From NCBI RefSeq assembly GCF_030684315.1, contig NC_081394.1:2666001-2730000 (forward strand): a stretch of 64,000 nucleotides of DNA, given 5' to 3'. Under the pieces are notes generated by a model. That model did not search any database. It worked only from the letters and a program-made list of their open reading frames with translations, and was not told where the DNA came from. The translations under genes and the position numbers were made by a program. Shown piece after piece: positions 14,838-55,203 of the stretch. Every line of letters begins with the position of its first letter. Within the stretch, counting starts at the first letter, position 1. The stretch comes from Stegostoma tigrinum. Taxonomy: Eukaryota.

Positions 14838-14907
14838 ATGAAGAGACCTCAGTGCAAAATGCTGTTAATTATTTGGACCTTCACTGCATGCATCACTCTA
14901 CTGTCTG
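14838..14907 (+). CDS. Exon 1 of + gene: signal peptide [23 protein letters not shown]
   Basis: aagATG start, basic N-region and hydrophobic core, phase-1 donor G|gtacgt compatible with the V exon; not in the ORF track. Confidence 0.8.
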
Positions 14908-18726: not shown

Positions 18727-18765
<39 letters not shown>

Positions 18766-29600: not shown

Positions 29601-32600
29601 GATCACTGATGGGAAACTGTCAGCCAAGTGAGTTCATTACAAACAAAACAATTACAAAAAAATAGCAGTTTACCAACAAACAGACGTCTGCAAATATATA
29701 CTACACATGCGGTGCCTCAGTGGTTAACACTGCTGCCCACGGTGCCAGGGACCTGGGTTCGATTCCACCCTCGGGTGACTGTCCGTGTGGGGATTGCACA
29801 TTCTCCCCGTGTCTGCGTGGGTTTCCTCCCACAGTCCAAAGACGTGCAGGTTAGGGTGGATTGGCTGTGCTAAATTACCCATAGTGCCCAGGGATGTGCG
29901 GGTTAGGGTGGATTGGCCGTGCTAAATTACCCATAGTACCCAGGGATGTGCAGGTTAGGGTGGATTGGCCATGCTAAATTACCCATAGTGCCCAGGGATG
30001 TGCGGGTTAGGGTGGATTGGCCGTGCTAAATTACCCATAGTGCCCAGGGATGTGCAAGTTAGGGGGATTGGCCGTGCTAAATTACCCATAGTGCCCAGGG
30101 ATGTGCAGGTTAGGGTGGATTGGCCGTGCTAAATTACCCATAGTGCCCAGGGATGTGTGGGTTAGGGTGGATTGACCGTGCTAAATTACCCATAGTGCCC
30201 AGGGAAGTGAGGGTTAGGGTGGATTGGCCTCCAACCATGTCATTGACCCGTCAACTACGCTGATTTCTACTGGACTGGGCCATGCCCCATGTAATAGTCA
30301 TAGAGTTATAGAGCTGTACAGTACGGAAACAGACCCTTCAGCCCAACACGTCCATGCTGACCAGATACCCTTATTAATCTAGTCCCATTTGCCAGCATTC
30401 AGCCCATATCCCTCTAAACCCTTCCTATCCATGTCCCCGTCCTGATGCTTTTTAAATGCTGTAACTGTACCAGCCCCCAACACTTCTTCTGGCAGCTCAT
30501 TCCATACACGCACCACCCTCTGTGTGAAAAAGTTGCCCCTCAGATCCCTTCCACGCCTTTTCACTCTCACCTTAAACCTACACTCCTCGAGCTTTGGGCT
30601 CCCCTACCCTGGGGAATAGATCTTGCCTAGTTATCCTACCCATGATTTTATAAACCTCTATAACCCCTCAGCCCCCGACGCTCCGGGGAAAATAGCCCCA
30701 GCCTATTCAGCCCCTCCCTGTAGCTCAAACCCTCCGACCCTGCCGAGAGCACGATGGGATGATCAGCGGATGGGCTGAGGAACGGCAGCTGGAGTTTAGT
30801 TTAGATAGGTGAGACGAGCTGCATTTTGTTTGGGCCAATCAGGCTGGACTTATACGCATAATCTTACACAGCTGCATCAGGTCCCTCTATTTTATTCGCG
30901 TATAATTCATAGATTAAAAATAACATTTTCTATACTTGCTAACCGTCTGACAACTTGCGGAAAGTGCACAGAATTGGATGACCTGTTCCATGAGACACCC
31001 TCCCACTTGCTGATGCTCATCAGAGTCACTCCTGCCTGGAGAGCTGTCTCATGCCATGCCACATTAGTAAGTCTGGCACTATCTGTACACCTCCATTGTA
31101 GTCCACCTGTGCCCACACACGGGTCATCCATGATGATGGGGCATCTTCCTGCCCAGTCTCCACTTTAGCCTCAAGCCCCAGGTCTCTGCAGCTTTTCAGC
31201 TCTGCACAAGCGAGCAGAAAGTCAATATTTTCGTACCTGACTGTCTCTCCTTACACCTCCTGCAATTTCAAGTGTTCTTTCCTTGGTCTTGAGGAAATGT
31301 GTGGAGGGCATGGAATTTCTAGCACACGCTCGCTTCCAAGTCATTTATCTCTAGGTTTCCGAAGCAGACATGAAATTGGATAGGGTACAGCAATGTCCTG
31401 GTTATAAGTCCGTACTCCTCTGTTGTTAACACATCTGCTGCCTCAGGCAGTTTGATTCTGATTTTATATAGAATCCTTGGGGCGTGGAAGCAGGCCATTC
31501 AGCCCCAATCCTGGCTGCCTCCTTTCGGGTATAGATTGGGTTATTGGCGGCTGTCTTTTTCCTAAGATGGGGATTTCAAGACGGGGGAGGGGGCTACATT
31601 TTCAAGGCGAGAAGAGAGAAATGTAAGAAAGACAGGAGGGGGCAATTTTTTTTACACAGAGGGTGGTTCGTGTGTGGAATGAACTTCCAAAGCAAGTGGT
31701 GGATACGGTTACAATATTTAAAAGACATTTGGATGAGTACACAAATAGGAACGGTTTGAAGGGATATGGGCCAGGAGGAGGCAGGGGCTGGCTTAGTTTG
31801 GGGTAATGGTCGGCATGGACTAGATGGGCCAAAAGGTCTGTTTCCATGCTCTAGGGCTCTATCGCTCATCGTGAAGACACGAATCTACTACTTTCTTCCA
31901 TTGTGACAGCACCCTCTTCAATCATTGCTGTGGGTCCTGCGGAGAAAAGGGCTCTGATGCCATGAATTATTTTCTTTGTAGATCGACCAGTCGTGACGAT
32001 AACGGGGTATGATGGGACCTGGAGTGTAAACACACACAATGTTACTGTTACATGTAGCACAGATGCCAATCCTGAACCAACTAATTACACCTGGAGAGGG
32101 TACGTTAGAAAGGAATTCGTTCGCTCAGACGTTCATGTTGTAGACTTTCTACGCTGTATGAATAATTGTGCATTGATATACTATTTGTGATACAGAAATG
32201 TAGAATATAGGATCACAGATAGGCCATTCGGCCCATCGAGCCTGCTTCACCATTCGATCATGTCTCTCATGTCTATCAACCCCATTCCCTTGTCTCCTCC
32301 CTCTAACTCTCCATCCCCTTGCTCATCTGTCATTGAGACCCTATCTATCTCTGTCTTACATACACTCAATGACCTACCCTCACCAGCTCCCCTCTGTAGG
32401 AATGTGTCCCACAGATTCACATCCCTTCGGCTGAAGAAATTCCTCTCCCATCTCAGCTCTAAAGGGTTGTCCCATCGCCCTGAGGCTGTGCCTGTCCCAG
32501 TCTCTCCCACTGGTGGAACCATCTTCTCCGTGTCCGCTCCATCCAGGCCCCTCAACATTTTCCGAGCTTCAATCAGATATGCTCCTCCTCCCTTTTAAAT

Positions 32601-35600
32601 TCCACAGAACCAGAGTCTTCAACCACTCCTCATGGGAGGAGCCCTTCATCCTGGAATCATTTTCATGAATCTCCTCTGAATCCTCTCCAAGGTCAGAACA
32701 TCCTTCCTTAGATAGGGTTCTGAAGAGCTGAAAGAGGCCATTCAGCCCCTTGCAACAATCCTTTGAAGGCCATCCCACCCAGATTCCGACCCTATCCCCA
32801 TAACCACACATTTCCCATAGCTAATCCACCTAGCCTGGATTACACATGCCTGGGCACTAAGGGTAATTTATCATGGCCAAACCGCCCTAACTTGTACATC
32901 TTTGGACTGTGGGAGGAAACCGGAGCACCCGGAGGAAACCCACGCAGACGCAGGGAGAATGTGCAAACTCCACACAGACTGTTCCCGAGGGTAGAATTGA
33001 ACCTGGGCCCCTGGGGCTATATAACAAAGATATGGAAATTAAAACTGCCCTCACTGTTCCAAACTCAGTCTGACCAGAGCCTTATACAGTACACCTCTGC
33101 TCCTGTAAACTAGCCCTCTTAAAATGAATGCTGACATTGCATTTTCCTTCCTAACTGCCAACTGAACCAACATGTTTAACCTTAAGAAATCCTGAAGTGG
33201 GACTCTCAAGTCCGTTCAGCCCTTAGATAATGACATAGTCAGCGTACGCTGCTGTCTCATCAAACCAGCCTCGACCAAGCAGTGTCTCAGACACAGAGCT
33301 TAACAGTTGAGTCAAGTTCTGCATCGGAAATCCTGGGATTAGTTTCCACTTTGGCTGAAGCTGGGAACGTAGTCATAGCCCCAGTGATAGTGAGTCCAGC
33401 AAGTCCACACTGAAACTCAGAGAATCCCACTCAGACCCGTCCCCCTAATCTACACATACCTGGACACTTTGGGCAATTTCCCATGGCCAACCCACCCTAA
33501 CTTGTACATCTTTGGACTGTGGGAGGAAACCAGAGCACCCGGAGGAAACCCGTGCAGGCACGGGGAGAATGTGCAAACTCCACACAGACAGTCGCCCGAG
33601 GGAGGGATCGAACCCACGTTTCTCATGCTGTGACGCAGCAGTGTTAACCACTGAGCCACCGTGGTACGCTTGCCTTTATTGGTCAGTACATTGAGCACAA
33701 GAATATAAGGAAATGGGGCAGGAGTGGTCTGGCCCCTCAAGCCTGCTCTGCCATCCAATAAGTGGACTCAGCTCGACTTACCAGCCCGTTCACTGGAACC
33801 CTTAATTCCTTTATTGTTCAAAAATCTGTCTTATAAACATTCAATAAGGTGGCCTCAACTGCTTCACTGGGCAGGGAATTCCTCAGATTGGGTGAGGACA
33901 TTCCTCAACTCAGGCCTGAGTCTGCTTCCTCTTGTTTTGAGGTTATACCCCTCGTTCTCATTTCATCTGCTAGTGTGCACAGCGTCCCTGCTTCTTTTCT
34001 CATCTATTCCCTTCTTAATTTTATGTGTTTCTATAAGATTCCTCATCATTCCTCAAAATTCCAACAAGAGTTGGGATGTCACATTGCGGGTCTACAGGGC
34101 ATTAGTGAGGCCACTTTTGGAATACTGCATTCAATTCTGGTCTCCCAGCTATGGGAAGGGTGTTGCAAAGCTTGATAATGTTCAGAAAAGATTTACAAGG
34201 ATGTTGGAGGGTTTGAGCTACAGGGAGGGGCTGAATGGTCTGGGGATATTTGCCCTGGAGTGACGGGGGCTGAGGGGTGACCTTTATCGAGGTTTATAAA
34301 ATCATGAGGGGCATGGACAGGTTAAACAGACAAAGTCTTTTCCCCCAGGGTAGGGGAGTCCAAAACTAGAGGGGCATAGGTTTAAGGTGAGAGGGGAAAT
34401 ATTTGAAAGAGATCTAAAGGGGAACTTTTTCACACAGAGGGTGGCGTATGTACAGAATGGGATGCCGGAGGGAGCAATGGAGACTGGTACAGTTACAGCA
34501 TGTAAATGGTCAGAAATTACACAACACCAGGTTTTAGTCCAGCACTCTTCAGGTGTTAGTGAGAGAGGGAGCATCAGACACAGGATCCATAAATAAAAGA
34601 TCACAGGGGCACACCACTGATGAGGATGTATTAAACAAACCTAAGATGCTGTTAAATTTTTCATCGGTTAGAAAGTTTTAATCGATTAATATGTGTATGT
34701 AAATCCCTGAATTTGTTTCGTGTCACTGCCCTGGGAGAATGAAAGGCTTTATCAGTGTGAAGAAGAGGTGACATTTTTGGTCAGAGAATGCATGTTAGGA
34801 TGTGAGGCCTTGTTTAGAATCTGTTTGTGTTTTGGTTTAGAGTCAGACTGGCTTTATTCCTAAAATAGGAATTTATAAAATGTCACATTGACCGACTGTA
34901 AGCAGATTCTAAACAAGGCCTCACACTCTAACATGCACTGTCTGACCTAAAACGTCACCTCTTCTTCACACTGATAAAACCTCTCGTTCTCTCAGGGCAG
35001 TGACATGAAGCAAATTCAGGGATTTACATACACATGTTAATCAATTAAAACTTACTGGCTGATGAAAGGTTTAATAACACCTTGGGTTTGTTTAATACAT
35101 CCTCATCAGTGGTGTGCCCCTTTGACCTTTTATATAAATGCTGTGTCTGATACCACTTCACTAACACCTGAAGGAGGAACGAGGCTTGTGTTTTCAAATG
35201 AACCTGTTGCCCTATAACCTGGTGTTGTGTGATTTCTGACCTTGTCCACCCCAGTCCGATACCCGCACTGCCACAGCATTTAAAAAGGCATCTGGGTGGG
35301 CACACGAATAGGAAGGGACTGGAGGGATATGCTGTCAAATGGGACTGGATTTATTTCGGATAACTGTTGGGTGCGGACGTATTGGACCAAAGGCTCTGTT
35401 TTCCATGCAGTGTGACTCTATGACTGTAAATGTGGGTTTGCTGCAACTATTTTCTGTTGTAATTTGCAAGGTTACCAGAAGGAGTGGAGATCAAAAATGC
35501 ACAGGTGTTCATCGGGGAGGAGAGCGCTCTGGAAAATGGCAACTGGACATGTGAAGCTGCCAACACAGTTGGGATAGGAGTGGGCCGTGTGGAAGTTGTG

Positions 35601-38600
35601 CTAGGATCGAGCAATTCCTCAGGTACACCGTACAGTGATCTCACATACAGCATCAGTGGCCATTCACTCTGCTAACCATGAGGGATTGTGGTCAGCGATG
35701 GGTAATAGGTCGAACAAGAATTGGTGCATTTGGTCAAAAGGAGAAGAGGATGGAATTAAAAGTCAGACTCGACACTGAGCAGGGGGAGTCCCAGGTACCA
35801 ACGGTTTACTTCCATGCCTGTGGGCAGGGGCTCAGAGCCAAGCTGCAAACAGCAGTGACTTTTATTCACAAAATACTGCCACCCGTCCTATTCCTGGAGA
35901 GCAATGGACCTGTCACTAACTTAGCATTCAGAGAACGTGTGTCACTTACTAAGCAAATCTTCCAAATCTGGCTGTTTAGGAATCCAAACCAACTTTAACA
36001 ATGCAACCTTCCCACAAGTCAGCAGATTCAAAGCGAAATCTGTGCTGCCTGAAAGCAGCTGAAAGTTAATGTGGGAGACAGTAGGAACTGCAGATGCTGG
36101 AGTCTGAGATAACAAGGTGTGGAGCTGGATGAACACAGCAGGCCCAGCAGCATCAGAGGAGCAGGAAAGCTGACATTTCAGGTTGAGAGTGATAATGGGA
36201 ACTGCAGATGTAGGAGAATCCAAGACAACAAAGTGTGAAGCTGGATGAACACAGCAGGCCAAGCAGCATCTCAGGACCCTTCTTCAGAAATGGCCCAGAC
36301 CTGAAACTTCAGTCTTCCTGCTCCTAAGATGCTGCTTGGCCTGCTGTGTTCATCCAGCTCTACACCTTGTTATCTTGAATGTTAATGTGTTTTCCTGACA
36401 GGACTGTACTGTGGTTTAAAGGCTTCGCTATCTAATTAGCTACCATGAAATAGTGTATAATATCCTAAGGATGAGAACTCCAAACCCCAACCCCTCCCTC
36501 AGGGGTTTGACCTCAAGTTACCCCAATGAGTGTCCAGGTCTTCAACAAGAACTGGCCGAATTTTGCTTTCTGACCTGCGGCTGTCTGGTGACCTTCTGTT
36601 ATCTTTTGGGGTTTTCTGCACCTTATCTCCAAAACTCACAGACTCGGGGATTCCTTTTTCCTCATTAGAACTGTGATGGAATACTCATTTCCTACTCTGA
36701 GACATCAATCCTAAGTGTGAGCACAGTTTTCTCCACACTTTGGGCTCTTCCTGCATTAACCCTCGCCATGCTGAATAATACTGGGCTGTTCATAGAGGAG
36801 ACAGACAGGTTAAAGAGGCAGGGATGGAGCCAGTAGAGGTGAGTGTCGGTGGGGAGGGGATAGGTCAGTCCGGGGAGGTCAAGGGGGCAGGATGAGATTA
36901 GTAGGTAGGAAGTGGAGGTGTGGCTTGAGATGGGAGGAGGGGACAGGTGAGGAGAAGAACGGGTTAGGAAGGCGGGGACAGGCTGGTCTGGTTTTGGGAT
37001 GCGTTAGAGGGAGGGGGGATTTTGAAGCTTGTGAAGTCCACATTGATACCATTGTGGCTGATGAGTTAACCTTGGGATGTCTGGGGATGATGGCGGGCCT
37101 CCTTCATGCCTGGAAACAAAGCAAAGCATTGCAGACCTCATCGAATGTGACAGATCCATTAATAACAGAAGGGCCATGCTGATTTGTAACCCAAAGCCTT
37201 GCTCACTCTCCATTCCCTTGCTGTTTTAAAAGGTCATACCTATATTGTGCTCACCATTTCATGTGTGGTCGTGGCACTGCTGATCGTAGCTCCAGTGGCA
37301 TTGCTCATTGTCCTACAAATCAAGAAACAACGCAATTCAGCAGGTAAATAATTTGAAACTAAAAGTAGAAGTTTTTTCCTGGACAACAATAGGTATTTCA
37401 ACACATTGCAGCTGTTCGATAATGCATCATTCCATCTTTCATAGGTGACTGTCTATTTACGCAGTCATGGTCCTGATAATTAGCTGCAGGATGGCTCAGC
37501 GGTCGGCACTGCTGCCTCACAGCGCCAGGGGACCGCGTTCGATCCAAACCACGGGCGACTATCTGTGTGGAGTTTGCACATTCTCCCTGTTTCTGCCAGG
37601 TGCTCTGGTTTCCTCCCACAGTCTAAAGATGCGCAGGTTGGGGTGGATTGGCCATGCTAAATTACCCATAGTGCCCAGGGATGTGCAGGTTAGGGTGGAT
37701 TGGCCATGATAAATTACCCATAGTGCCCAGGGATGTGCAGGTTAGTGTGGATCGGCCATGATAAATTACCCATAATGCTCAGGGATGTGCAGATTAGCGT
37801 GGATTGGCCGTGCTAAATTACCCATAGTGCCCAGGGATGTGTAGATTAGGTGGGTTATAGGGGGATGGGTCTGGATGGGATGCTCTGAGGGTCGGTGCAG
37901 ACGTGTTGGGCCGAAGGGCCTGTTTCGATGCTGTAAAGATTCTATTCTATGATCTATTTTCCTGGATAGCTGCAGGTAATTCAACACATTACAGATGTTC
38001 GATAACGAATCATTCCACCTTTTATGGGTAACACATATTCCGCCTGGGAACCCTGCAGCCATATGGTATCAATGTGGACTTCACCAGTTTCAAAATCTCC
38101 CCTTCTCCTACTGCATCCCTAAACCAGCCCAGTTCGTCCCCTCCCCCCACTGCACCACACAACCAGCCCAGCTCTCCCCCCTACCCACTGCATCCCAAAA
38201 CCAGTCCAACCTGTCTCTGCCTCCCTAACCGGTTCTTCCTCTCACCCATCCCTTCCTCCCACCCCAAGCCGCACCCCCAGCTACCTACTAACCTCATCCC
38301 ACCTCCTTGACCTGTCCGTCTTCCCTGGACTGACCTATCCCCTCCCTACCTCCCCACCTACACTTTCTCCACCTATCTTCTTTACTCTCCATCTTCGGTC
38401 CGCCTCCCCCTCTCTCCCTATTTATTCCAGTTCCCTCTCCCCATCCCCCTCTCTGATGAAGGGTCTAGGCCCGAAACGTCAGCTTTTGTGCTCCTGAGAT
38501 GCTGCTTGGCCTGCTGTGTTCATCCAGCCTCACATCTTATTTTCATGGGTAACTGTCTATTTATGGTGCCATTGTTCCAATAATTAGTTGCGGGGTGACA

Positions 38601-41600
38601 CGGTGAATCATGGAATCCCCACAGTGTGGAATCAGGCTGTTCGGCCCAACAAGTCCACACCAAGCTTCAGAAAAGCATCCTAGCCTGCTGCTGTAAGCCA
38701 TACATTTCCCATGGCTCACCCAGCTAGCCTGTACATCCTGGACACTAATGGGACAATTTAGCACGGCCGATCCTCCCTAACCTGCTCATCTTTGGACTGT
38801 GGGAGGAAACCGGAGCACCCGGAGGCAACCCACGCAGACACGGGGAGAATGTGAAAACTCCACACAGATGGTCACCCGAGGGTGGGATCAAACCCAGGTC
38901 CCCAGCTACCAGAGGAAGCGATGGGGGCTGCTACAGTTATAACATTTAAAAGGCATCTGGTTGGGGACATGGATGGGAAGTGTTTAGAGGGATATGGGAC
39001 AAATGCTGGCAAATGGGACTATTTTAATTTAGGTTATGTGGTTGGCATGAAAGAAGGGTCTATTTCCATGCTGGATATCTCTGTGACTCCATGCTAACCA
39101 CTGAGCCACCACCCAGCCCATTTCTTGTACTATCAACCAGTTATTGGCTGTGAAGTTACAAATATCTCGATGATGCCTCCCCTCTCTCCCAGTTCACTTC
39201 CTTTAAGACTTGACTCACACTGCTGCTTTAATCATCCATGCTGCTCGTGTTCTTGAGCAGTTAATTTCCCATACCACTGCCTCAGATCCACATATCTCTC
39301 GATTTTCTCTTGATTGAGGATTCCAGTCCTCTATCCATGCTGTGGATGACTGCATTTCAGACATATTCCCACTCTCTCTGTCTCTCTTTAGCTCTCACTC
39401 CTTCAGGCCTGCCCCCCTGGGTTTTTCCCCCCTCCCTCAATCTGTGGACCCACCATTCTGTGCCCTTCAATGAACACACTTTGCTTCTTTCAGTTCTGCC
39501 AACGAGGTGCCACCATAGATGTGGTTTACATTCCCATTTCAACCCTCTACCGCCTCCGCCAACTGCCCTCCTTCTCCCATAGTACTGTTCTCTTCATGCC
39601 AGGTCACTCACCAGGCCCTCACCTCTCCATTTCTCACTTACGGGTGTACGAAAGCCGTTACATCAGCATCATTTTCTGTTCATCTGTGGGATAGGGGCTG
39701 GCTGGGACAAGCATTTACTGCCCTGCCCCTAGTTGCCCACCTTGAGAAGGTGGGGGTGAGCTGCCTTTTTGACCCCGCTGCAATCCATGCTCTATGGGTT
39801 GACCCACAATGGCCCTTAGGGAGGGAATTCCAGGATTTTGACCCAGCAACACTGAAGGAACGGGGATACATTTCCAAGTCAGGATGGGGAGGGTCTCGGA
39901 GGGGAACTTGCAGGGGGTGATGTTCCCATGTTACTGCTGCCCCTTGTCCTTTTAGATGGAAGTGGTCGTGGGTTTGGAAGGTGCTGCCTGAGGGGCCTTG
40001 GTGAGGTTCTGCAGAGCATCTTGTGGATGGTACACACTGCTGCGACTGAGCGTCGGTGGGGGGAAGGGAGTGGGATGTTTGTGGATGTGGGGCCGATCGA
40101 GTGGGGGCTGCTCTGTCCTGGATGGTGTCGAGCTTCTTGAGTGTTGTTGGAGCTGTCCCCATCCAGGGACAAGTGGGGGGTATTCCATCCCCCTCCTGAC
40201 TTGTGCCTTGTCGATGGTGGGACAGGCTTTGGTGGGGGGGGGGGGCGGGGGGGGGGGGGGGGGGGGGGGGCGGTTCAGGACGGGAGTTACTCGCTGCAGG
40301 ATTCCCAGCCTCTGACTTGCTCTTGGAGCCGCTGTGTTTATGCAATGGGTCCCAGTTGAGTTTCTAGTCAATGGTAGCCCCCAGGATGTTGATAGCAGGG
40401 GATTCAGTGATGGGAATATCATTGAATGTCAAAGGGTGCTGGTCAGATCATCGCTTGTTGGAGACGGTCACAGCCTGGCATTGGGGTGGTGCAAATATTA
40501 TGTGCTACCTGTGGGCCCAGATCTTGAGATGATAAATATGGACCTGGAAATTCACAGCTGGTCAGGCAACAAGTGAGGAACAGGGAAGTTGATGTTTCGG
40601 GCCGAAATCCTTTATCAGGACCGGGGAGGGGGAGTGGAGCCCAGAAATAAATAGAGGGAGAGGGGTGGGTCTTGGGTGGGGGTGAGGGTAGGTAGGATGG
40701 AGATAGGTGAATGCAGGTAGGGTGTTACTGTTACTGTGGGTCAGTCAGTGGGATGTGTGGAGCGGATGAGGAACATGGACACATCGTTGGGAGGAGAGAT
40801 TTTGAAGCTATTGTCCAGATCTTGTTGTATTTGAACACGGACTGTTTTGGTATCTGAGGAGTTGTGAATGTTGCTGAAAATTACTTCCTTCCATTTCAAA
40901 ATTCCATGCTGGAAACACACCTTCAGGAATAGCAGTGATTTACAGGCACTCGAAACAGAAAAGAGTTTGCTTCACTTCTGATCATTTCAGCAGTTTTCAT
41001 CTTTCGGCTTACAAGTATCTCGGTAAAACCCCTTCACTGCAGACGAACGGTCAGTCCTGAGGGAAGGGCTCACCTGCATTCCCTTCCACCGACATGTCAA
41101 CGAATACCTCTCACACTTGGACGTTGAGCAGTTTTTCTGCAGCCTCCGCACTTACTTGTTTAATTGTGAACCTACCCCTCCCTCGACTGACCAGTTCTCC
41201 CACCTCCAACACACTCCGTCCTCCAGGGCACCATCCCAAGGTCTCCTACTCTCCCTCGACCTCTTCATCTCCAAATGCCGTCGTGACATCTATCGACTCA
41301 ACTTCTCCACCCCGTCACCCACTCCAACCTCTCCCACTGCAGAACGGGCAGCCCTCCGCTCCCTCCGCTCCCTCCGCTCCAACCCCAACCTCACCATCAA
41401 ACCCGCAGACAAGGGTGGCGCAGTGGTAGTATGGCGCACTGACCTCTACATCGCCGAGGCCAGACGCCAACTCTCCAACACCTCCTCCTACCGCCCCCTG
41501 GATCATGACCCCACCCCTGACCACCAAACCATCATCTCCCAAGCCATCCACAACCTCATTACATCAGGTGACCTCCCACCCACAGCCTCCAGCCTCATCA

Positions 41601-44600
41601 TTCCCCCACCCCACACAGACTGCTTCTATCTCCTTCCCAAAATCCACAAACCTGCCTGCCCTGGTCAACCCATTGTCTCAGCCTGTTCCTGCCCCACCGA
41701 ACTCATCTCCACCTATCTCAACTCCATTTTCTCCCCTTTGGTCCAGGAATTCCCTACCTACATCCCTGACACCACCCATGACCTCCACCTCCTCCAGAAA
41801 TTCCAATTCCCCGGTCCCCAACACCTAATTTTCACCATGGACGTCCAGTCCCTATGCACCTGCATTCCCCATGCAGATGTCCGAAAGGCTCTCCGCTTCT
41901 TCCTGTCCCCCAGGCTCGACCAGTCCCCCTCCACCAACACCCTCATCCACTTTGCCCGAACTCATCCTCGCCCTCGACAACTTCTCTTCCGATTCCTCCC
42001 ACTTCCTACAGACAAAGGGGGTGGCCATGGATACCCGCATGGGCCCAAGCTACGCCTGCCTCTTTGTAGGTTACGTGGAACAGTCCCTCTTCCGCACCTA
42101 CACTGGCCCCAAACCCCACCTCTTCCTCCGTTACATTGATGACTGTATCGGCGCCAGCTCATGCTCCCACAAGGAGCTCGAACAGTTCATCCACTTCACC
42201 AACACCTTCCAACCCAAACTCACATTCACCTGGGCCATCTCCATCATATCCCTCACCTTCCTGGACCTCTCTGTCTCCATCTCAGGCAACCAGCTTGTAA
42301 CTGATGTCCATTTCCAGCCCACCGACTCCCACAGCTACCTAGAATACACCTCCTCCCACCCACCCTCCTGCAAAAATTCCATCCCCTATTCCCAATTCCT
42401 CTGCCTCCGCTGCATCTGCTCCCACGATAAGACATTCCACTCCTGCACATCCCAGATGTCCTTGTTCTTCAAGGACCGCAACGTTCCCCCCACAGTGGTT
42501 GAGAACGCCCTTGACCGTGTCTCCCGCATTTCCCACAACACATCCCTCGCACCCCGCCCCCGCAATAACCACCAAAGCAGAATCCCCCTCGTCCTCACAT
42601 ACCACCCAACCAACCTCCGGATACAACGCATTATCCTCCGACACTTCCGCCATCTACAATCCGACCCCACCACCCAAGACATTTTTCCATCCCCACCCTT
42701 ATCTGTTTTCCGGAAGGACCACTCTCTCCATGACTCCCTTGTCTGCTCCACACTCCCCTCTAACCCCACCACACCCGGCACCTTCCCCTGCAACCGCAGG
42801 AAGTGCTACACTTGCCCTCACACCTCCTCCCTCACCCCCATCCCAGGCCCCAAGAAGACTTTCTACATCAAGCAGATGTTCACCTGCACATCTGCCAATG
42901 TGTACTGTATCTGCTGTTCCAGATGTGACTTCCTCTACATCCTGGGCCTCTTGCAGTGCCACAAAGATGCCACCCGAAGGTTGCAGGAACAGCAACTCAT
43001 ATTCCGCTTGGGAACCCTGCAGCCCAATGGTATCAATGTAGAATTCACAAGCTTCAAAATCTCCCTCCCCCGACTGCATCCGAAAAGCAGCCCAGCCCAT
43101 CCCGGCCTCCCTAACCTGTCCTTCCTCCCACCTCAAACCCCATCCCCATTTCCTACCTACTAACCTCATCCCGTCCCCTTGACCTGTCTGTCCTCCTTGG
43201 ACTGACCTATCCCTTCCCTGACTCCCCACCTACGCTCACCTTTACTGGCTCCATGCCCGCCTCTTTGACCTGTCTGTCTCCTCTCCATCTTCTATCCACC
43301 TCCCACTCTCTCCCTATTTATTTCAGAAGCCCCTTCCCCTCCCCCATTTCTGAAGAAGGGTCTAGGCTTGAAACATCAGCTTTCCTGCTCCTCTGATGCT
43401 GCTGGGCCTGCTGTGTTCATCCAGCTCCACACCTTGTTATCTCAGATTCTCCAGCATCTGCAGTTCCTACTATCTCTGCTTATTAATATACATGTGTACA
43501 GTGCAGAACAAATTTAAGATATCAACAGCATAGTTTGTTGTTTGCAGAAAGAAAGTGAATATGCAATTATACGATGCTACATTTGAACCAGCAATTGTCT
43601 GTTCTTGTACGCAGGATAATAGACCAAAAGATTCGAGAACAGCTTCTTCACCCTTGTTATTAGGCTTCTGAATGGACCTCTCCAATTTCAAATTTAATGT
43701 TGACCTCACTGTCTGTGCTCCTTCCCTGTCGCTGAAACATTTACTGTTCGCTCTGTTGTATTACTCTAATGCACTTTGATCTGCCTACACTGCAAGCAAA
43801 ACAAAACTTTTCACTGTACCTGTGTAAAAGTAAGAAATCAGATCAAATCAAATGTCTTTGCAGGCGAGACCAAATTCAAGATACCAACTCAAGCTTATTC
43901 TCACTGCAGTATCAATTTTTGCTCCTTCTTGGCATTCCTGCATCTGAGTATATTCAAGATGGAAATAGACAGGCTCTTGATTGTGAAGGGGGTCAAGGGT
44001 TATGGGGAGGAAGCAGGAGAATGGGGTTGAGAAACTTATCAACTCTCATCGAACAGCAGAGCAGAATCAATGGGCCAAATGGCCTAGCTTCTGCTCCTAT
44101 CTCTTCTGGTCTTACGGCCTGGCTGAGTGTGGGATGAATGACAGGTTACATTTTACGATCATGATAGAAGCTATCTTATCTGTCCTGCTTTATTCCTTCA
44201 GAGGAAGTCTATATCAACATTCCCAATCAAAGGAAGAAAATTGAACAGGTCAGTGAATCCTTTCAACTCATCTACAATCATGTCCCTTTTAATGATAACA
44301 GGCTGGTCCCTTTTGGGCTAATAATATGATTTTAAGCAGAACCACTTGTTAGAAATTGACACTTAATCTCCCAAAGAGTAGAGTAGGAAATAAAACATTC
44401 ACTTTATTATGGGCATGTATTTTAATATTTTTCTCAGGTGTGAAAGTAGGTATATAATGGCACAGTTATTACTAGCAGGTGCTTATTAATATTTATGAGA
44501 TATGTGTACAGTGTATAGTTTGTTGTTTGCAAAAAGTAAGAAAGTAAATATGCAATTATACAATGCTACTTTTGTACTAGCAAGTGTCTGTTCATATACA

Positions 44601-47600
44601 TAAGAAATACATAAACAGTAACAAAACAATTAAATGTGGACAGGTTTCGCATTGATGATGATATCACTTGAAGTGATGATGGTGTAAAATGCCACAAAGA
44701 ATCCCTGATGTGGAGGTCGAGGTCAGAAATCACGCAACATTAGGTTATAGTCCAACGGGTTCACTTGGAATCACAAGCTTTCGAAGCACTGCTCCTTTAT
44801 CGGGCGAAGTGGAAGGAACTGCACAGGCACAGAATTTATAGGCAGAGAGATCAAACAATCATACAAGTGGTCTGGGTGGAATGTCAACAGGCTGAATAAT
44901 AAACCTCTGCAGGTGATCAAAAGTGTCAGATGGTGTGAGTAAAGTGTCAACAGCTGAAGGGATGACCTATGATCTGATCAATTGAGGCAATGAGATAATT
45001 ACAAAAAACAATGAAAAATAAGGTGGCGATGGAGACAAACAAAATGGCTGCAAATAACATGATAGGTACAGGACCATAAGACCATAAGACATAGGAGTGG
45101 AAGTAAGGCCATTTGGCCTATCAAGTCCACTCCGCCATTTAAATCATGGCTGATGGGCATTTCAACTCCACTTCCCTGCACTCTCCCCGTAGCCCTTGAT
45201 TCCTTGTGAGATCAAGAATTTGTCGATCTCTGCCCTGAAGGAGTCACATGGTGAGGGTCTAACAAAAGTAACAAGTACTCTGCAACAATAGTAGTCTCGC
45301 CAACTTTAAGGGCACTTAAATGGTCATTGGATAAACATATGGATGCTAATGGAAACATGTAGGTTAGATGGGCTTCAGATTGGTGTCATAGGTCAGTGCA
45401 ACATCGAGGGCCGAAGGGCCTGTACTGCGCTGTAATATTCAATGTTCTGTATGTTCTATAATCCAAAACTGTATCAGCTAATTAAGGTAAAGAGTCAAGT
45501 TGCCAAGGTGATGGTGTCAGAGCAGGACAGTAAGGATGATTTTACAAACAAAAGAACAGTGCAGTGGGGTCACATGTAGCATGACATGAACCCAAGGTCA
45601 TGGTTGAGGCTGTCTTCATGGGTAAGGAACCCGATCAGTTTCTGCTCGGCAATCTTGCATTGTTGCTTTGGCGGATGTTTACCCAAAGACCCAAGGCCGA
45701 ATGTCCCCACCCGCTGAAATGATCCCCCACTGGTAGGGAACATCCCTGCCTGGTGAGTGTCGAATAGTGCCCATTCATTCATTGTTGTAGCATCTGCACG
45801 GTCTCGCCGATATACCATACCTCTGGCAGCATCTAAGGTAGACAACATTGGCCAAGTCACATGAGTGTCTGGGTGGTGTTCCTTTGTGTGATGGTAGTGT
45901 CCATGTCAATGATCTGGCACATCTTGCAGTGGTGACAGGGTTGTGTGGTGCTGTGGGTCGATGTTGCCGCGAAGGTTGGGTGGTGTGCTGCGAACAATGG
46001 TCTGTTTAAGGTTTGGCGGCTGTTTGAAGTCGAGAAATGAGGGGCATAGTGATGATGTTGGCATGGTGTTGGTCATTATCGCTGGAGTGTTGAAGGCTGC
46101 GGAGAGCGTGGCGCAGTCGCTTCGGTCTGGGGAAGTATTGGATGTCGAAGGGTACCCCATCGGCGCTATCTCGTGTCTGTCTTCTGAGGAGGTCATTATG
46201 ATTTCTCACTGTGGCACATGGAAACTGGCCATCAATGAGTTTTATACCCTGTTACTGTGAGGGTGTCTTTCAGCATTTTTAGGTGTCTGTTGCGTTCTTC
46301 CTTGTCTGAGCAGATCCTATGCATACACGGGGCTTGTCCATTGGGGATGGCCTCTTCCATCTATTTCAGGTAGAAGAGCAGCATCATGAGGTTATCCATG
46401 GGCTTGCAGTAGGGTGAGGCAGCAGTGTCTATCCTTGATGGATACACATATTGTCTAAGAGTGAGATAGATTTTGAAGAGTGACATTTAATATAAAATAG
46501 TGACATTTAAGCGACTGCTGGACATGCACATGGGCAGCAGTGAATTGAGGGGAATGTAGGTTAGGTTATTTTGTTTTTGGATGAGGATTATTCCACGGCA
46601 CAACATCGTGGGCCAAAGGGCCTGTACTGTGCTGTATTTTTCTATGTTCTATGTTCTAAGAGTGGTCATGGGGTGGACATGGTGCGGAGGCGCTGGTATT
46701 GGCCTGGGGCGGACAAAGTGATGACGGCTCCGAAAGCTTGTGATTTCAAACAAACCTGCCACACCATAACCTGGTGTCCTGAGTCTTCTGACAAAGAACC
46801 TTGCGACTGGAATTTTACAGAGAAGCGTACCAATTGCTTTCAGGCCTTTGTATCCCTGCTTTAGCGGAAACTAAAGCTCAACACTTTTATGGACCGTTTG
46901 ACACAGGTTTAAAGCAACTGGGGGAAGGACGAACAAAATGGTGAAGTTTTTTATTGACACGGTGAGCTGTTATGATCTGCCTGAAAGCCTGATAGTAACA
47001 GGAATACTAAAGAACAAAAACGAAAGTTGCTGGAAAAGCTCAGCAGGTCTGGCAGCATCTGTGAAGGGAAAAAAAGAATCAGAGTTAACGTTTCGGGTCC
47101 GGTGACCCTTCCTCAGGACTGAGGGAGGGTCACCAGACCCCAAACGTTAACTCTGTTTTCTCCTCCGCAGATGCTGCCAGACCTGCTGAGCTTTTCCAGC
47201 AACTTCCGTTTTTGTTCCTGATTCACAGCGTCCGCAGTTCTTTCGGTTTTTATTAGGAATCCGGAAGAATTGGGGTGGGGCGGGGGGTGCGTGCGTGGTT
47301 AGAAAATTATTTACAGCGGAAATAAATGAGGCCGCTCTAGGGGAAAACTCAAGATGAAGAGTGGAATATTTAGCAAGACCTTTGAAAGAACATGCTCGGG
47401 TGCAGTGGGTTCGGAAATCTGTATGACTTGAGACTCCAGTGACCACTGCAATATATTAATTTATTCCCAGAAAAAGATTGGAGGCATTGGTCATCTTATT
47501 CGTTGTCCAAATTGAGCCCATCATGTCTGCATTTCCCCTTCTGTTTCCCTTCCGGTCGAGGTCTATTCCAGAATATTCCATACCTGAAAACTCTTGTCTT

Positions 47601-49377
47601 TTTTCCCAAGGAATCCCCAGAGATCAACGCTACCTACACTGTAAGTAGAGCTCACGTACTAATTCACGCGCAACGTCAATTGAACCTAACATTATCGAGG
47701 GAGCAGTAAATCTCACTTATGATCATTTCCCACAGAGTGTGAACTTAGGGGAACAGTCGGTGTACAGTGACCTAAAAAGGTAGGATTCATGCTGTTTCCT
47801 CAAGCGTCAAACAATCAACCTATAATAGAAATCCATCCTGCTAAACATCCACCTTCATATCATGTATCTCTCAATTTATGTGCGAAATGTCTGTTTAATA
47901 GCTAACAGTTTATCTATNNNNNNNNNNNNNNNNNNNNNNNNNNNNNNNNNNNNNNNNNNNNNNNNNNNNNNNNNNNNNNNNNNNNNNNNNNNNNNNNNNN
48001 NNNNNNNNNNNNNNNNNNNNNNNNNNNNNNNNNNNNNNNNNNNNNNNNNNNNNNNNNNTATCTGTCCATCTTCATCTGTCTACCTATCTATCTATCTACA
48101 TCTATCTCTACATATCTCTATCTATCCAGCTATGTATATCTATCTCTCGATCTCTATCTATCTATCTATCTATCTTTGTCTATCTCTATCTATCTATGTA
48201 TCAATTTTTATCTATCTATATCTATCTATCTAAAAAACAAAAGAACTGTGGATGCTGTAAATTAGGAATAAAAATAAAGTTGCTGGAAAAGCTCAGCAGG
48301 TCTGGCAGCATCTGTGGAGGAGAAAACAGAGTTAACATTTCGGGTCTGTTGACCTTTCCTCAGAACTGATGGTATGTATGTGTGTACCTATCTATCTATC
48401 TATCCATATCTCTCTGTATATGTATTCATCTATCCATCTGTCTGTCTGTGTATCCATCTATCTATCTTTCTCTATCTGTCTAATTATCTATATATGTATC
48501 TATCCATCTTTCTCTAGCTTTCTTTCTATCTATCTATCTGCCTATCTGTCTATCTCTATCTATCTATGTATCTATCTTTATCTATCTATATTTATTTGTC
48601 TATCTATCTATCTCTATCTCTCTATATCTATCTATGTATCTGTCCATCTTCATCTGTCTACCTATCTATCTATCTTTCTATCTCTATCTATCTATCTATC
48701 TATCTATCTTTATCTATCCTTCTATCTATTGATCTATCTCTCTATCTATCTACATCTATGTATCTGTCCCTCTTTCTCTATCTATCTATCTGTCTTTCGA
48801 TCTGTATGTATCTATCCATCTTTATCTATCTGTATCTATCTATCTGTGCATTCCATATAAAAACTAAACGATCCTCTAAATCAGGAACAAAAACAGAAGT
48901 TGCTGGAAAAGCTCGGTAGGTCTGGCAGCATCCGTGAAGAAACTGGTCGGAGCTAATGTTTTGTGTCCAGTGACCCTTCTTCAGAAGGGTCCTTCCTATT
49001 CTGAGGAAGGGCCACTGGATTCAGAATGTTAGCTCCGATTGACCATTCACGGATGCTGCTAGAACTGCTGAACTTTTCCAGCAACTTCTGTTTTTATCTA
49101 TTGATCGATCTGTCTATCTATATCTATCTATCTATTTATCTATCTATCTATTAATCTATCTATCTATATCTATCTATCTATGTGCCTATCCTCTGTGTTA
49201 TCTGTTTATCTTTCTATCTTTGTATCTATTGACGCATCTATCCAGCTAACAGTTTGTTCAACCATTTCTGTATAACAGCTGTTTTAAATCCTTTATTCCG
49301 ATATATTTATACAGATTATGTTTGTTTATTTTGCCGATTTTGATCCTGGGTCTGTTATGCTTTTATTTTCCAGGTGA
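14838..49377 (+). CDS. Complete multi-exon nectin/PVR(CD155)-family Ig-superfamily receptor (leader-IgV-IgC-IgC-TM-cytoplasmic ITT+ITAM), 402 aa; join(14838..14907,17234..17572,21205..21498,31982..32099,35471..35622,37233..37343,44202..44248,47611..47640,47736..47779,49374..49377)
   Basis: All nine introns are GT..AG with matching phases (1,1,1,2,1,1,0,0,2); the joined 1209 nt reads open to TGA. The V domain has the PVR-family submotifs ITQ, (A/V)X6G (VVYNLKYG) and LFP in CEITLFPQG. The third Ig domain is split over two exons as in nectin genes. Confidence 0.88.
15305..15715 (-). mobile_element. Non-LTR retrotransposon RT C-terminal fragment (CR1/L2-group); second copy at 39690-40510 (-)
   Basis: KAQVR..MEY.P and [14 protein letters not shown] remnants in shifted frames. 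Confidence 0.7.
16815..17115 (+). mobile_element. Old CR1 3' end directly upstream of the + strand V exon
   Basis: gggccacagtctc..agactgagatgagga.gaatttcttctctc..ggctgaatggccta pattern. Confidence 0.7.
17234..17572 (+). CDS. Exon 2 of + gene: nectin-type IgV domain
   Basis: Acceptor tgtctttcgatag|TT, donor CTAG|gtatgt, 339 nt, phase 1-1; LPC..ITQFSW..DGSIRI..DEGNYTC..LFPQG V-set pattern. Confidence 0.95.
17608..18810. repeat. Long degenerate (TG)n microsatellite, partly N
   Basis: Direct reading. Confidence 0.95.
18810..19207 (+). mobile_element. Penelope-like element 3' end/pLTR
   Basis: Matches 43100-43455; includes CTGAAGAAGGGGCCTGGCCCGAAACGTC. Confidence 0.8.
19207..20000. repeat. Degenerate telomere-like (CCCTAA/CCCTGA/CCCTAG)n interstitial array
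   Basis: Hexamer periodicity, e.g. ccctaaccctaacccgaaccctaaccctaa. Confidence 0.85.
21205..21498 (+). CDS. Exon 3 of + gene: nectin-type IgC domain 2
   Basis: Acceptor ttttatctctgacag|TG, donor CTCT|gtaagt, 294 nt; [17 protein letters not shown]...[19 protein letters not shown] is typical of nectin domain 2. Confidence 0.93.
21748..23345 (-). mobile_element. 5'-truncated Penelope-like retroelement (RT C-terminal half + GIY-YIG endonuclease + pLTR), frameshifted, inserted in a SINE 52-bp array
   Basis: [27 protein letters not shown]; VYC....CGFLYIG.AKRRL GIY-YIG motif. Confidence 0.9.
23346..23700 (-). mobile_element. HE1/V-SINE-like tRNA SINE with about 4 copies of the internal 52-bp unit (continues at 21680-21747)
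   Basis: The - strand shows cggtggctcagtggttaac A box, gggttcaatccc B box and ctgtctgtgtg.agtttgcacattctcccc V-domain. Confidence 0.8.
23954..28195 (-). mobile_element. Near-full-length decayed CR1 LINE: ORF1 (27175-27927; Zn-finger/coiled coil + SGNH esterase), ORF2 in pieces (APE 25948-26832; RT 24059-25920), (ATTGTCT)n tail
   Basis: ORF1 [17 protein letters not shown]; APE VGITETW, MGDFN, GSDH; [34 protein letters not shown]; 5' boundary approximate. Confidence 0.93.
28405..29302 (+). mobile_element. CR1 3' fragment with a nested CR1 3' fragment of another subfamily (about 28692-29052)
   Basis: [20 protein letters not shown]; host sequence breaks at aagggacct and resumes at gggcctgaggggcaactttttc. 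Confidence 0.8.
29708..30230 (+). mobile_element. HE1/V-SINE-like element with about 7 tandem 52-bp units
   Basis: A/B boxes, then repeats of gggatgtgcaggttagggtggattggccgtgctaaattacccatagtgccca. Confidence 0.85.
30295..30745 (-). mobile_element. CR1 3' fragment
   Basis: [17 protein letters not shown]. Confidence 0.85.
31982..32099 (+). CDS. Exon 4 of + gene: first half of Ig domain 3 ([14 protein letters not shown]...[15 protein letters not shown])
   Basis: Acceptor ttttctttgtag|AT, phase-2 donor GG|gtacgt; matches the nectin Y-P-V-I-GYD..W...C...ANP-P..Y-W pattern. Confidence 0.92.
33445..33662 (-). mobile_element. HE1/V-SINE-like element (others at about 21036-21135, 32810-33015, 38700-38905, all -)
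   Basis: tRNA-like head plus V-domain. Confidence 0.8.
34506..35272. mobile_element. About 770-bp fold-back element (second Penelope-type family) inserted in a CR1 3' fragment (34065-35425)
   Basis: Arms about 34508-34825 and 34903-35241 are reverse complements; flanking duplication acagcat(g/t)taaa. Confidence 0.75.
35471..35622 (+). CDS. Exon 5 of + gene: second half of Ig domain 3 (LPEGV...[13 protein letters not shown])
   Basis: Acceptor aatttgcaag|G is phase-compatible with exon 4; donor TCAG|gtacac; contains the second Cys (CEAAN.VG). Confidence 0.9.
37233..37343 (+). CDS. Exon 6 of + gene: transmembrane exon ([37 protein letters not shown])
   Basis: Acceptor ctgttttaaaag|GT, donor GCAG|gtaaat, 111 nt, phase 1-1; about 24 hydrophobic residues followed by the basic stop-transfer KKQR; no charged TM residue. 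Confidence 0.88.
37490..37950 (+). mobile_element. HE1/V-SINE-like element with about 4 copies of the 52-bp unit
   Basis: A/B boxes, array, CR1-like tail. Confidence 0.8.
38033..38544 (+). mobile_element. Penelope 3' fragment with intact hammerhead motif (38451-38483) and 9-bp target duplication
   Basis: ATGGGTAAC at 38024-38032 and 38545-38553. Confidence 0.8.
41025..43455 (+). mobile_element. Long Penelope-like retroelement (RT + GIY-YIG with internal deletion), one frameshift near 41950; inverted pLTR remnant upstream (about 40553-40810)
   Basis: [33 protein letters not shown]; the endonuclease segment is deleted relative to the 21748-23345 copy. Confidence 0.9.
44202..44248 (+). CDS. 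Exon 7 of + gene: cytoplasmic exon [16 protein letters not shown] (YxN/ITT-like motif)
   Basis: Strong acceptor ctttattccttcag|AG, donor CAG|gtcagt, phase 1-0. Confidence 0.78.
44710..46480 (-). mobile_element. Decayed Penelope-like element of a second family, with nested CR1 ends (45070-45460)
   Basis: [12 protein letters not shown] remnant; terminus ggtcagaaatcac.caaca..aggttatagtcc shared with the 34506 fold-back. Confidence 0.6.
47007..47255. mobile_element. Short palindromic element (third pLTR-like family); related copies at 48235-48370, 48880-49095, 60390-60470, 53630-53750
   Basis: gttgctggaaaagctcagcaggtctggcagcatctg...cagatgctgccagacctgctgagcttttccagcaac. Confidence 0.7.
47611..47640 (+). 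CDS. Exon 8 of + gene: [10 protein letters not shown] (first ITAM tyrosine)
   Basis: Acceptor cttttttcccaag|GAA, consensus donor ACT|gtaagt, phase 0-0. Confidence 0.82.
47736..47779 (+). CDS. Exon 9 of + gene: [14 protein letters not shown] (second ITAM tyrosine)
   Basis: Acceptor catttcccacag|AGT after a 95-nt intron; donor AG|gtagga; read-through would give AGG TAG, the same R-stop. Confidence 0.82.
47860..49245. repeat. Degenerate (TCTA)n field, partly N, in the last intron of the + gene
   Basis: Direct reading. Confidence 0.9.
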
Positions 49378-53433: not shown

Positions 53434-53849
53434 GTGTAAAAGTATTTTTAATGCTTCAGTAATGGTGTCATGTTCTACTAAATAACTTGCTTGTTCGTAT
53501 GTAATTTGACATATTTTTGTTAACCGAAGATATTTTGAAATGGATAGACCTATAGGGATTGCTAAGTGAATAGTGCACACCCATACCCCCAAAATAAGAA
53601 GTACAATAATGATCAGAAGATCTACATTAAAAATGAAGAACTGCAGATGTTGGAAATCGGGAACTAAAACAGAAACCACGAGGAACATTCAGCAGAGACA
53701 AGTAACATCTGTGCAGAGAAATCAGAATTCGGGTCTGGTGATGCTTCAGGATGGATTCGAGCTTGGAAAAGCTATACGCTGAAAGATTAGAATGGAATCT
53801 GTCAGAGAGGAGGAGAACTTCTTTTCTTAATTAAATTATATCTTCTTAA

Positions 53850-55203
53850 GTCTCACGTCTGTCGTCTGCAAGGTGTTCGAAAGGATTCTGAGGGATGGGA
53901 TTTATGGCCATCTGGAAGAGCATGGCTTGATCAAATACAGTCAACACGGCTTTGTGAGGGGTAGGTCATGCCTCACAAACCTTATCGAGTTCTTTGAGGA
54001 TGTGACTAGAAAAGTTGATGAGGGTCGAGCTGTGAATGTGGTGTATATGGACTTCAGTAAGGCATTTGATAAGGTTCCCCATGGTAGGCTCATTCAGAAG
54101 GTCAGGAGGAATGGGATACAGGGGAACTTAGCTGCCTGGATACAGAATTGGCTGGCCAGCAGAAGACAGCGAGTGGTAGTAGAAGGAAAATATTCTGCCT
54201 GGAAGTCAGTGGTGAGTGGGGTTCCACAGGGCTCTGTCCTTGGGCCTCTTCTGTTTGTAATTTTTATTAATGACTTGGATGAGGGGATTGAAGGATGGGT
54301 CAGCAAGTTTGCAGATGACACAAAGGTTGGAGATGTCGTTGACAGTGTAGAGGGCTGTTGTAGGCTGCAGCGGGACATTGACAGGATGCAGAGATGGGCT
54401 GAGAGGTGGCAGATGGAGTTCAACCTGGATAAATGCGAACTGATGCATTTTGGAAGGTCAAATTTGAAAGCTGAGTACAGGATTAAGGATAGGATTCTTG
54501 GCAGTGTGGAGGAACAGAGGGATCTTGGTGTGTAGATACATAGATCCCTTAAAATGGCCACCCAAGTGGACAGGGTTGTTAAGAAAGCATATGGTGTTTT
54601 GGCTTTCGTTAACAGGGGGATTGAGTTTAAGAGGCGTGAGATCTTGTTGCAGCTCTATAAAATTTTGGTTAGACCGCATTTGGAATACTGCGTCCAGTTC
54701 TGGTCGCCGTATTATAGGAAAGATGTGGATGCTTTGAAGAGGGTTCAGAGGAGGTTTACCAGGATGCTGCCTGGACTGGAGGGCTTATCTTATGAAGAGA
54801 GGTTGACTGAGCTCGGTCTCTATTCATTGGAGAAAAGGAGGAGGAGAGGGGACCTCATTGAGGTATACAAGATAATGAGAGGCATAGATAGAGTTGATAG
54901 CCAGAGACTATTTCCCAGGGCAGAAATGGCTAGCACGAGGGGTCGTAGTTTTAAGCTGGTTGGAGGAAAGTATAGAGGGGATGTCAGAGGCGGGTTCTTT
55001 ACACAGAGAGTTGTGAGAGCATGGAATGCGTTGCCAGCAGCAGTTGCGGAAGCAAGGTCATTGGGGTCATTTAAGAGACTGCTGGACATGCATATGGTCA
55101 CAGAAATTTGAGGGTGCATACATGAGGATCAATGGTCGGCAGAACATTGTTGGCTGAAGGGCCTGTCCAGTGCTGTACTGTTCTATGTTCTATGTTCTAT
55201 GTT
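53850..55203 (+). mobile_element. 5'-truncated, relatively young CR1 LINE (RT + 3'UTR, (TTCTATG)n tail)
   Basis: [37 protein letters not shown]; few disablements. Confidence 0.92.

Follow-up and report, generated by a model that had tools for sequence, protein, structure and literature searches.

The window analyzed here is a stretch of 64,000 nucleotides from the zebra shark, Stegostoma tigrinum (NCBI RefSeq assembly GCF_030684315.1, contig NC_081394.1, positions 2,666,001 to 2,730,000 of the forward strand), and all coordinates below refer to it. Its forward strand carries a gene whose product joins three immunoglobulin (Ig) domains of the nectin/PVR type to a transmembrane (TM) helix and a short cytoplasmic tail, in which there is a motif resembling the immunoreceptor tyrosine-based activation motif (ITAM). 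On the reverse strand begins an inverted twin, with a near-identical ectodomain and a tail that bears an inhibitory (ITIM) and a switch-type (ITSM) motif of the same tyrosine-based kind. We describe the two genes and argue that they probably form a paired receptor.

The forward gene consists of nine coding exons and the first bases of a tenth. A leader exon (14838-14907, + strand, phase 1 donor), located by a six-frame search with a splice check and matching the database proteins P0152 and P0153, is followed by the IgV exon (17234-17572, 339 nt, phase 1-1), by a second Ig exon of the CD80-like C2-set (21205-21498, 294 nt) and by two exons with checked splice sites that share the third Ig domain (first half, 31982-32099, 118 nt; second half, 35471-35622, 152 nt). 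The TM exon (37233-37343) also matches P0152, and the hydrophobic core of its helix is free of charged residues, as the initial annotation of this DNA had stated. The tail is encoded by three tiny exons, cyt1 (44202-44248, phases 1/0), cyt2 (47611-47640, phases 0/0) and cyt3 (47736-47779, phases 0/2), and in all three of them reading and translation of the sequence found an AG acceptor and a GT donor. The last of these ends with two nucleotides of an arginine codon, which are completed by the coding start of a candidate last exon with a good acceptor (49374-49377, G followed by TGA; AATAAA at 49644). When the exon lengths are summed, the nine exons and these 4 nt give 402 codons with all phases compatible, and RefSeq XP_059497374.1 (P0152, "nectin-1-like isoform X2", 402 aa, ending ...YSDLKR) is exactly the same model. 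The peptide that the initial annotation had read from the three tiny exons is thus confirmed by canonical splice sites, by compatible phases and by its identity with isoform X2. These small exons are already part of NCBI's automatic annotation, under the generic name "nectin-1-like" only.

The proposed exon set at 44202-49377 was right as far as it went, but it has to be extended by an alternative last exon (53548-53569), which encodes (R)PIGIAK and a stop and is used in isoforms X1, X3 and X4 (P0153, P0154 and P0002). Isoform X1 (P0153) reaches 408 aa by this route, while in NCBI's models of X3 and X4 the TM exon is skipped or the start lies inside the V exon. TM-skipping isoforms are modeled by NCBI for both twins (P0154, P0002, P0001); the exon is in frame, and such proteins, with the third Ig domain joined straight to the tail, would have no membrane anchor.

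There are three ways to continue from cyt3: retention of the intron (AGG TAG), splicing to 49374 (AGG TGA) and splicing to 53548 (R-PIGIAK-stop), of which the first yields the same protein as the second. The cyt3 donor is followed after 139 nt by an assembly gap (47918-48058), which lies in the last intron or 3' untranslated region and outside the coding sequence. Since all three paths end or extend without it, the coding sequence and its frame are independent of this gap. Contigs of four genomic runs covering 47226-47900 contain 0 to 1 other letters and no variant in cyt2 or cyt3, and for cyt1, where their depth is low, no differences are listed; the individual used for the assembly may be among the sources of these runs, which, being genomic, carry no information on splicing. 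As they agree over cyt2 and cyt3, the valine of the tail motif YTSV is present in the DNA and is not a slip of the assembly.

Homology searches were made with the exons singly and full-length analyses with the protein P0152. Searched by HMMER on its own, the V exon retrieved two near-identical Stegostoma tigrinum "nectin-1-like" RefSeq proteins. Pfam assigned the V exon to the V-set (3.4e-15), the second Ig exon to the CD80-like C2-set (C2-set_2, PF08205; 6.3e-16) and the first half of the third domain to Ig_3 (2.3e-4), and within P0152 both halves of that domain align to nectin-1 D3. The solved structures (PDB) that rank highest for the V exon are nectin-1 (1e-13) and PVR (9e-13), followed by nectin-3, nectin-4 and nectin-2, and the second Ig exon finds the same family (nectin-1, nectin-2 and PVR). 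Residues 37-321 of P0152 align to nectin-1 with an E value of 6e-48, then to PVR (5e-43), nectin-3 and nectin-2. The nectin-type ectodomain claimed in the initial annotation is therefore confirmed by sequence comparison, and as a nectin/PVR type it extends over all three Ig domains. No CEACAM, TIGIT, CD226 or CD96 chain occurs among the best 60 solved-structure matches in these ectodomain searches. Membership of the CEACAM family was considered and rejected, as nectins and PVR lead for the V exon, the second exon and the full model alike.

The V domain retains its canonical cysteine pair and contains an (I)TQ triplet, which we take to be a trait of the PVR-like family. Adhesion of the nectin type is mediated by a lock (AX6G) and a key (T(Y/F)P) motif in the V domain (PMC10486284). 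The aromatic residue of the key is kept in the shark protein (T-L-F-P, aligned with A-T-F-P of nectin-1), and at the lock position Stegostoma has V-x6-G where the Hemiscyllium, Cetorhinus and Carcharodon copies have A-x6-G.

Classical nectins end in a PDZ motif, E/A-x-Y-V, through which they bind afadin. The zebra shark protein ends in ...YSDLKR or ...KRPIGIAK, without such a terminus, just as had been proposed, and because this terminus is lacking despite the nectin ectodomain, the gene is not a classical nectin. The initial annotation had framed it against the classical nectins; the better comparison is with PVR-like proteins, CD226 and TIGIT, and with CEACAM1 and CEACAM3.

In place of the afadin motif the tail has three tyrosine motifs. 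The two distal tyrosines are spaced 11 residues apart in YTSV-x7-YSDL, a spacing that translation of the exons confirms. Cyt1 contributes a membrane-proximal pYxNx site of the Grb2 type, E-E-V-Y-I-N-I-P, resembling the immunoglobulin tail tyrosine (ITT) motif. The first distal half-site is split after Y-T by a phase-0 intron, cyt2 ending with its Yx and cyt3 encoding the remainder. The strict ITAM consensus is (D/E)xxYxx(L/I)x6-8Yxx(L/I) (PMC2832619), and where exons encode an ITAM, a phase-0 intron interrupts its first YxxL after Yx; for receptors of the CEACAM3 type, an ITAM-like motif is defined as a pair of Yxx(L/M/V/I/F), and YxNx motifs are found in most ITAM-bearing CEACAMs (PMC5112662, PMC2832619). 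In the Stegostoma tail both distal sites are YxxPhi, lie at the distance usual for an ITAM and show the phase-0 split, but the first departs from the strict consensus, and the zebra shark motif, taken alone on its sequence, is ITAM-like only. In DNAM-1/CD226 a conserved D/E-I-Y-V/M-N is needed for Grb2 binding and natural killer (NK)-cell activation (PMC4647266). Cyt1 fits this CD226-type pYxNx site, a likeness of motif only and not orthology, as the architecture and the ranking of V-domain matches differ.

A full-length protein search with P0152 recovered tails of this type from six other sharks, in which the 41-residue tail occurs without any indel (one of them, Mustelus, is incomplete). The distal motif reads D-A-T-YASL-x7-YNEI in Chiloscyllium punctatum, where the D at -3 completes the published consensus, YTSL-x7-YNEI in Hemiscyllium ocellatum, YMGL-x7-YNEL in Cetorhinus maximus, YMGL-x7-YSAL in Carcharodon carcharias and YMGL-x7-YSEL in Pristiophorus japonicus. 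The species that bear the tail cover both Galeomorphii and Squalomorphii. Both tyrosines and the x7 spacer, whose conservation the initial annotation had left to be checked, are invariant, and YxxL-x7-YxxL/I is canonical, in all five complete orthologous tails. Since these five all have L at +3, this residue is ancestral and the valine of the zebra shark a lineage-specific L>V change. The Y and the N of the cyt1 YxNx are invariant in the seven sharks. Five of the six complete tails, that of Stegostoma among them, carry A at -2 of the first distal tyrosine and Pristiophorus carries S, while at -2 of the second tyrosine it is Pristiophorus that has an A (QAVYSEL). Because of these alanines, the ITIM consensus, (S/I/V/L)xYxx(L/V/I), is conserved at neither tyrosine. 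The ITAM pattern is conserved. A relaxed ITAM pattern, sought in the last 90 residues of about 160 proteins of the Ig superfamily, picked out this type of tail and only one unrelated protein. Protein searches with the tail only (P0152 residues 340-402; P0031 residues 145-207) returned the queries alone, blanks that mean little as the word index is too coarse, and an ESM Atlas search with the tail gave a best match of 0.79, which is under the level of chance matches.

Three further observations concern these orthologues. The Mustelus asterias model breaks off directly after ...SYM, and its end, ...GSYM|LR, hints at the same exon border. Among proteins P0031, P0161, P0163 and P0162 of Carcharodon carcharias there are copies that combine the same ITT and canonical ITAM tail with a single V domain only (207 aa, a TIGIT-like architecture), and one of these white shark copies has been automatically named "T-cell surface protein tactile-like". 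A white shark model of 94 aa is devoid of Ig domains.

The twin gene on the reverse strand is represented in the window by its IgV exon (388-726, - strand; protein P0151, "nectin-1-like") and by a leader exon (MSYLAWKTSLGVLLLLS; 8869-8938, - strand), the latter located by a six-frame search and approximate at its low end. The two V exons are inverted, 16.5 kb apart, and among their 339 nt there are 6 differences, of which 4 change an amino acid and 2 are silent. Their similarity, 95.9% over 539 nt, continues into the upstream intron up to an assembly gap. The start codons of the twins face away from each other at a distance of about 5.9 kb, and the remainder of the partner gene lies outside the window. 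At the protein level, the partner (P0151, 407 aa; model P0001 also belongs to it) and P0152 are 98.0% identical over 295 ectodomain columns and 29.5% identical over the TM segment and tail, and their leaders are unrelated. The tail of P0151, ...ITYASLDL...STVYADIKYQH, contains an ITIM and, after it, a site of the ITSM type. Near-identical ectodomains, opposite tail motifs and neighboring genes are thus found together, as expected of paired receptors, and both types of tail also occur in other sharks. Taken with the conservation of the tail in orthologues and the phase-0 split, this twin supports the intrinsic ITAM-type tail that the initial annotation had proposed.

A maximum-likelihood tree of the ectodomains reveals a different history from that of the tails. 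In Stegostoma, Hemiscyllium, Cetorhinus and Pristiophorus the ectodomains of the two types pair by species, on starred branches and with an identity of 93.5-98%, whereas between distant species the identity of ectodomains of the same type is only 45-64%. On this tree the tail label has to change 7 times, and neither type is monophyletic in any of the bootstrap trees. That the ectodomains group by species and the tails by type indicates a paired receptor whose two members gene conversion has held similar. The CEACAM pairs offer a precedent, in which old tails are combined with ectodomains homogenized species by species, a pattern ascribed to gene conversion of inverted genes under pathogen pressure (PMC5112662).

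An origin of the ITAM tail from the ITIM...ITSM tail by deletion of the spacer was also considered. MAFFT places TYxSLxL beneath TYASLDL; a homology of the two types is not supported, because in 26 of 30 local alignments compared with shuffled sequences z remained below 3, and this origin was rejected. A 688-aa protein of the hexanchiform shark Heptranchias perlo (P0010) appears to fuse two neighboring genes of the family, a V-TM-tail gene with LVYASLNL...VVYGVVKH followed by a gene with the complete V-C-C set and an ITIM/ITSM tail. Tandem clusters of the nectin-type family in this species are suggested by this model.

The interpretation that we consider probable is that the forward gene encodes the activating half of a receptor pair with an ectodomain of the nectin/PVR type (V, C2-set and third Ig domain). 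Activation and the direction of signaling are what we infer from the structure of the gene, its motifs and their conservation, the twin and the concerted evolution of the ectodomains. On this interpretation, the V domain would bind a ligand, most likely a molecule of the nectin/PVR family or a microbial adhesin targeting the inhibitory twin, and kinases of the Src family would then phosphorylate the three invariant tyrosines of the tail. Grb2 would bind at the YxNx closest to the membrane (EEVYINIP), as it does in CD226/DNAM-1, and the distal Yxx(L/V)-x7-YxxL would serve as a docking site for Syk or ZAP-70 through their tandem SH2 domains. Because the TM helix is uncharged, an adaptor of the DAP12 or FcR-gamma type would presumably be dispensable. 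The inverted twin, with its ITIM and ITSM, would deliver the opposite signal through phosphatases of the SHP type.

A number of observations weigh against this scheme. The Stegostoma tail fails the strict ITAM consensus at two positions around the first tyrosine (V at +3, N at -3); the exon joins and the expression of the gene rest on NCBI's models; and rays, skates and chimaeras are absent among the search matches. The SVYSDL sequence at the second tyrosine moreover fits the ITIM pattern, and with the ITT-like site it would reproduce the inhibitory arrangement of TIGIT. Finally, all three tail motifs (YINI, YTSV and YSDL) also fit the YxxPhi signals of endocytosis.

The main rival that emerges from these points is a tail that is inhibitory or acts as a switch like that of TIGIT. 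In that case SVYSDL would act as an ITIM and, together with the YxNx, bring in SHP-1, SHP-2 or SHIP-1, and the gene would be a second inhibitory paralogue. By general SH2 specificities, YxxV is a poor site of the Syk type. The four sequences SVYSDL, SVYNEI, SVYNEL and SVYSAL fit the ITIM pattern in five of the six species, and the pairing of an ITT-like motif with an ITIM is inhibitory in TIGIT (PMC11541569). The caveat in the initial annotation that SVYSDL can be read as an ITIM therefore holds for the zebra shark, but the pattern is not conserved: it is broken in Pristiophorus by the A at -2, whereas YxxL-x7-YxxL/I is invariant in the orthologues. The fixed, indel-free spacing of 11 residues also differs from the variable ITIM-ITSM spacing in the partner's tail, an ITIM/ITSM tail is already present on the partner gene, and a phase-0 split of YxxL is what has been described for ITAM exons. 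We judge this inhibitory reading unlikely, since it fits the evidence less well than an activating tail.

Less likely again is a nectin-like adhesion molecule in which the tyrosine motifs serve mainly for sorting, with YxxPhi directing AP-2 endocytosis or basolateral sorting and no immune signaling. Such a role would suit the fit of the three motifs to YxxPhi, the naming of similar motifs in the CEACAM papers as "endocytic or ITAM-like" (PMC5112662, PMC2832619) and the part played by nectin-type V domains in cell adhesion (PMC10486284). But sorting signals need neither a fixed x7, nor an N kept invariant two residues after the first tyrosine, nor a two-exon ITAM cassette, and the combination of an ITIM/ITSM twin with homogenized ectodomains is typical of paired receptors in immunity (PMC5112662), so that we hold this explanation to be quite improbable. 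An artefact of annotation or assembly, in which the gene is a silent or decaying duplicate and the small exons go unused, could be suggested by the six gaps and abundant repeat DNA of the window, by the duplicated V exon adjoining gaps and by the failure to find an RNA run that covers the stretch, but it is highly improbable when the frame is intact across nine exons with canonical splice sites, the same tail is kept at the same length in six other species and genomic runs confirm the letters of cyt2 and cyt3.

If the forward gene is indeed the activating member of such a pair, the system could be an ancient one in sharks. We tentatively propose, as a possibility to be taken seriously rather than as the probable outcome, that a paired receptor on a nectin/PVR scaffold predates the split of Galeomorphii and Squalomorphii, that gene conversion has repeatedly homogenized the whole ectodomains of its inhibitory (ITIM/ITSM) and activating (CD226-like YxNx and two-exon ITAM) members in each lineage, and that it represents either the ancestral TIGIT/CD226 axis or an independent pathogen decoy in the style of CEACAM1/CEACAM3 that signals without DAP12 or FcR-gamma. 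A function as a decoy for pathogens that enter through nectins is speculation.

A close parallel among known systems is provided by the CEACAM1/CEACAM3-type pairs of mammals, Xenopus and reptiles. There, as in the shark, an inhibitory member with ITIM and ITSM stands opposite an activating member with an intrinsic ITAM or ITAM-like motif and an uncharged TM segment, a phase-0 intron divides YxxL within the ITAM, YxNx is often present, and the genes are inverted with their ligand-binding exons homogenized by gene conversion (PMC5112662, PMC2832619). Unlike the CEACAMs, the shark receptors have an ectodomain of nectin/PVR type and a V domain with the canonical cysteine pair; the twins are near-identical in all three Ig domains, whereas the CEACAMs are so in the N domain only, and the shark pair has been kept in both shark superorders.

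The receptors CD226 (DNAM-1), TIGIT and CD96 share with the shark genes the superfamily of V domains known for lock-and-key features (PMC10486284), of which the zebra shark keeps the aromatic of the key and has V-x6-G at the lock, opposing receptors that presumably compete for one ligand and, in CD226, a D/E-I-Y-V/M-N to which the shark E-E-V-Y-I-N is similar (PMC4647266). The mammalian ectodomains are, however, divergent, with 1, 2 or 3 V-like domains, and lack an ITAM, whereas outside the membrane the shark twins share 98% identity, and an ITAM is added in the activating one. Nectins 1-4 and PVR (CD155) have the same V, C2-set, C2/I ectodomain, with an end-to-end alignment to nectin-1 and PVR; unlike the classical nectins, the shark gene exchanges the afadin motif for three tyrosine motifs and belongs to a fast-evolving family that is homogenized species by species. 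The ITAM adaptors (the CD3 chains, CD79, FcR-gamma and DAP12) appear to resemble the shark gene in their two-exon cassette, with a phase-0 intron in the first YxxL and an x7 spacer that has an NLG-like start. They differ from it in that the shark ITAM is located in the tail of a ligand-binding receptor with three Ig domains, and no homology to the adaptors has been demonstrated. An older survey reports no FcR-gamma homologue in sharks (PMC4016189).

Paired receptors with intrinsic ITAMs are well described for the CEACAMs of tetrapods, and the PVR-like axis, in which CD226 is opposed by TIGIT and CD96, is among the central immune checkpoints of mammals. In the literature we found nothing specific on nectin-type receptors of sharks or cartilaginous fish that bear ITAMs or act as paired receptors. 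If our interpretation is correct, adaptor-independent activation on a nectin/PVR scaffold would date to the common ancestor of living sharks, and the locus would provide a natural case of ectodomain homogenization maintained in at least four shark lineages. The automatic name "nectin-1-like" conceals a likely immune role of both genes.

The two genes are embedded in repeat-rich DNA. The introns contain several reverse-transcriptase and endonuclease open reading frames (ORFs) of long interspersed nuclear elements (e.g. 21978-23147, 24059-26832 and 41117-43163). Very abundant short interspersed repeats, with a summed contig depth of hundreds of thousands to millions in the genomic runs, are found at 44990-45500, 46510-46770, 47020-47275, 48260-48370 and 48890-49100, and at 47020-47230 they form an inverted pair. 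A long microsatellite field of the (CTAT)n type (48060-49230) surrounds the gap at 47918-48058, and directly after the V exon (17600-19720) there are (TG)n/(CA)n tracts, along with another four gaps; such tracts probably explain the breaks in the assembly. The alternative last exon (53548-53569) lies 5.8 kb downstream, adjoining reverse-transcriptase-like ORFs (e.g. 53873-54535), and this PIGIAK exon looks like one recruited from repeat-rich DNA.

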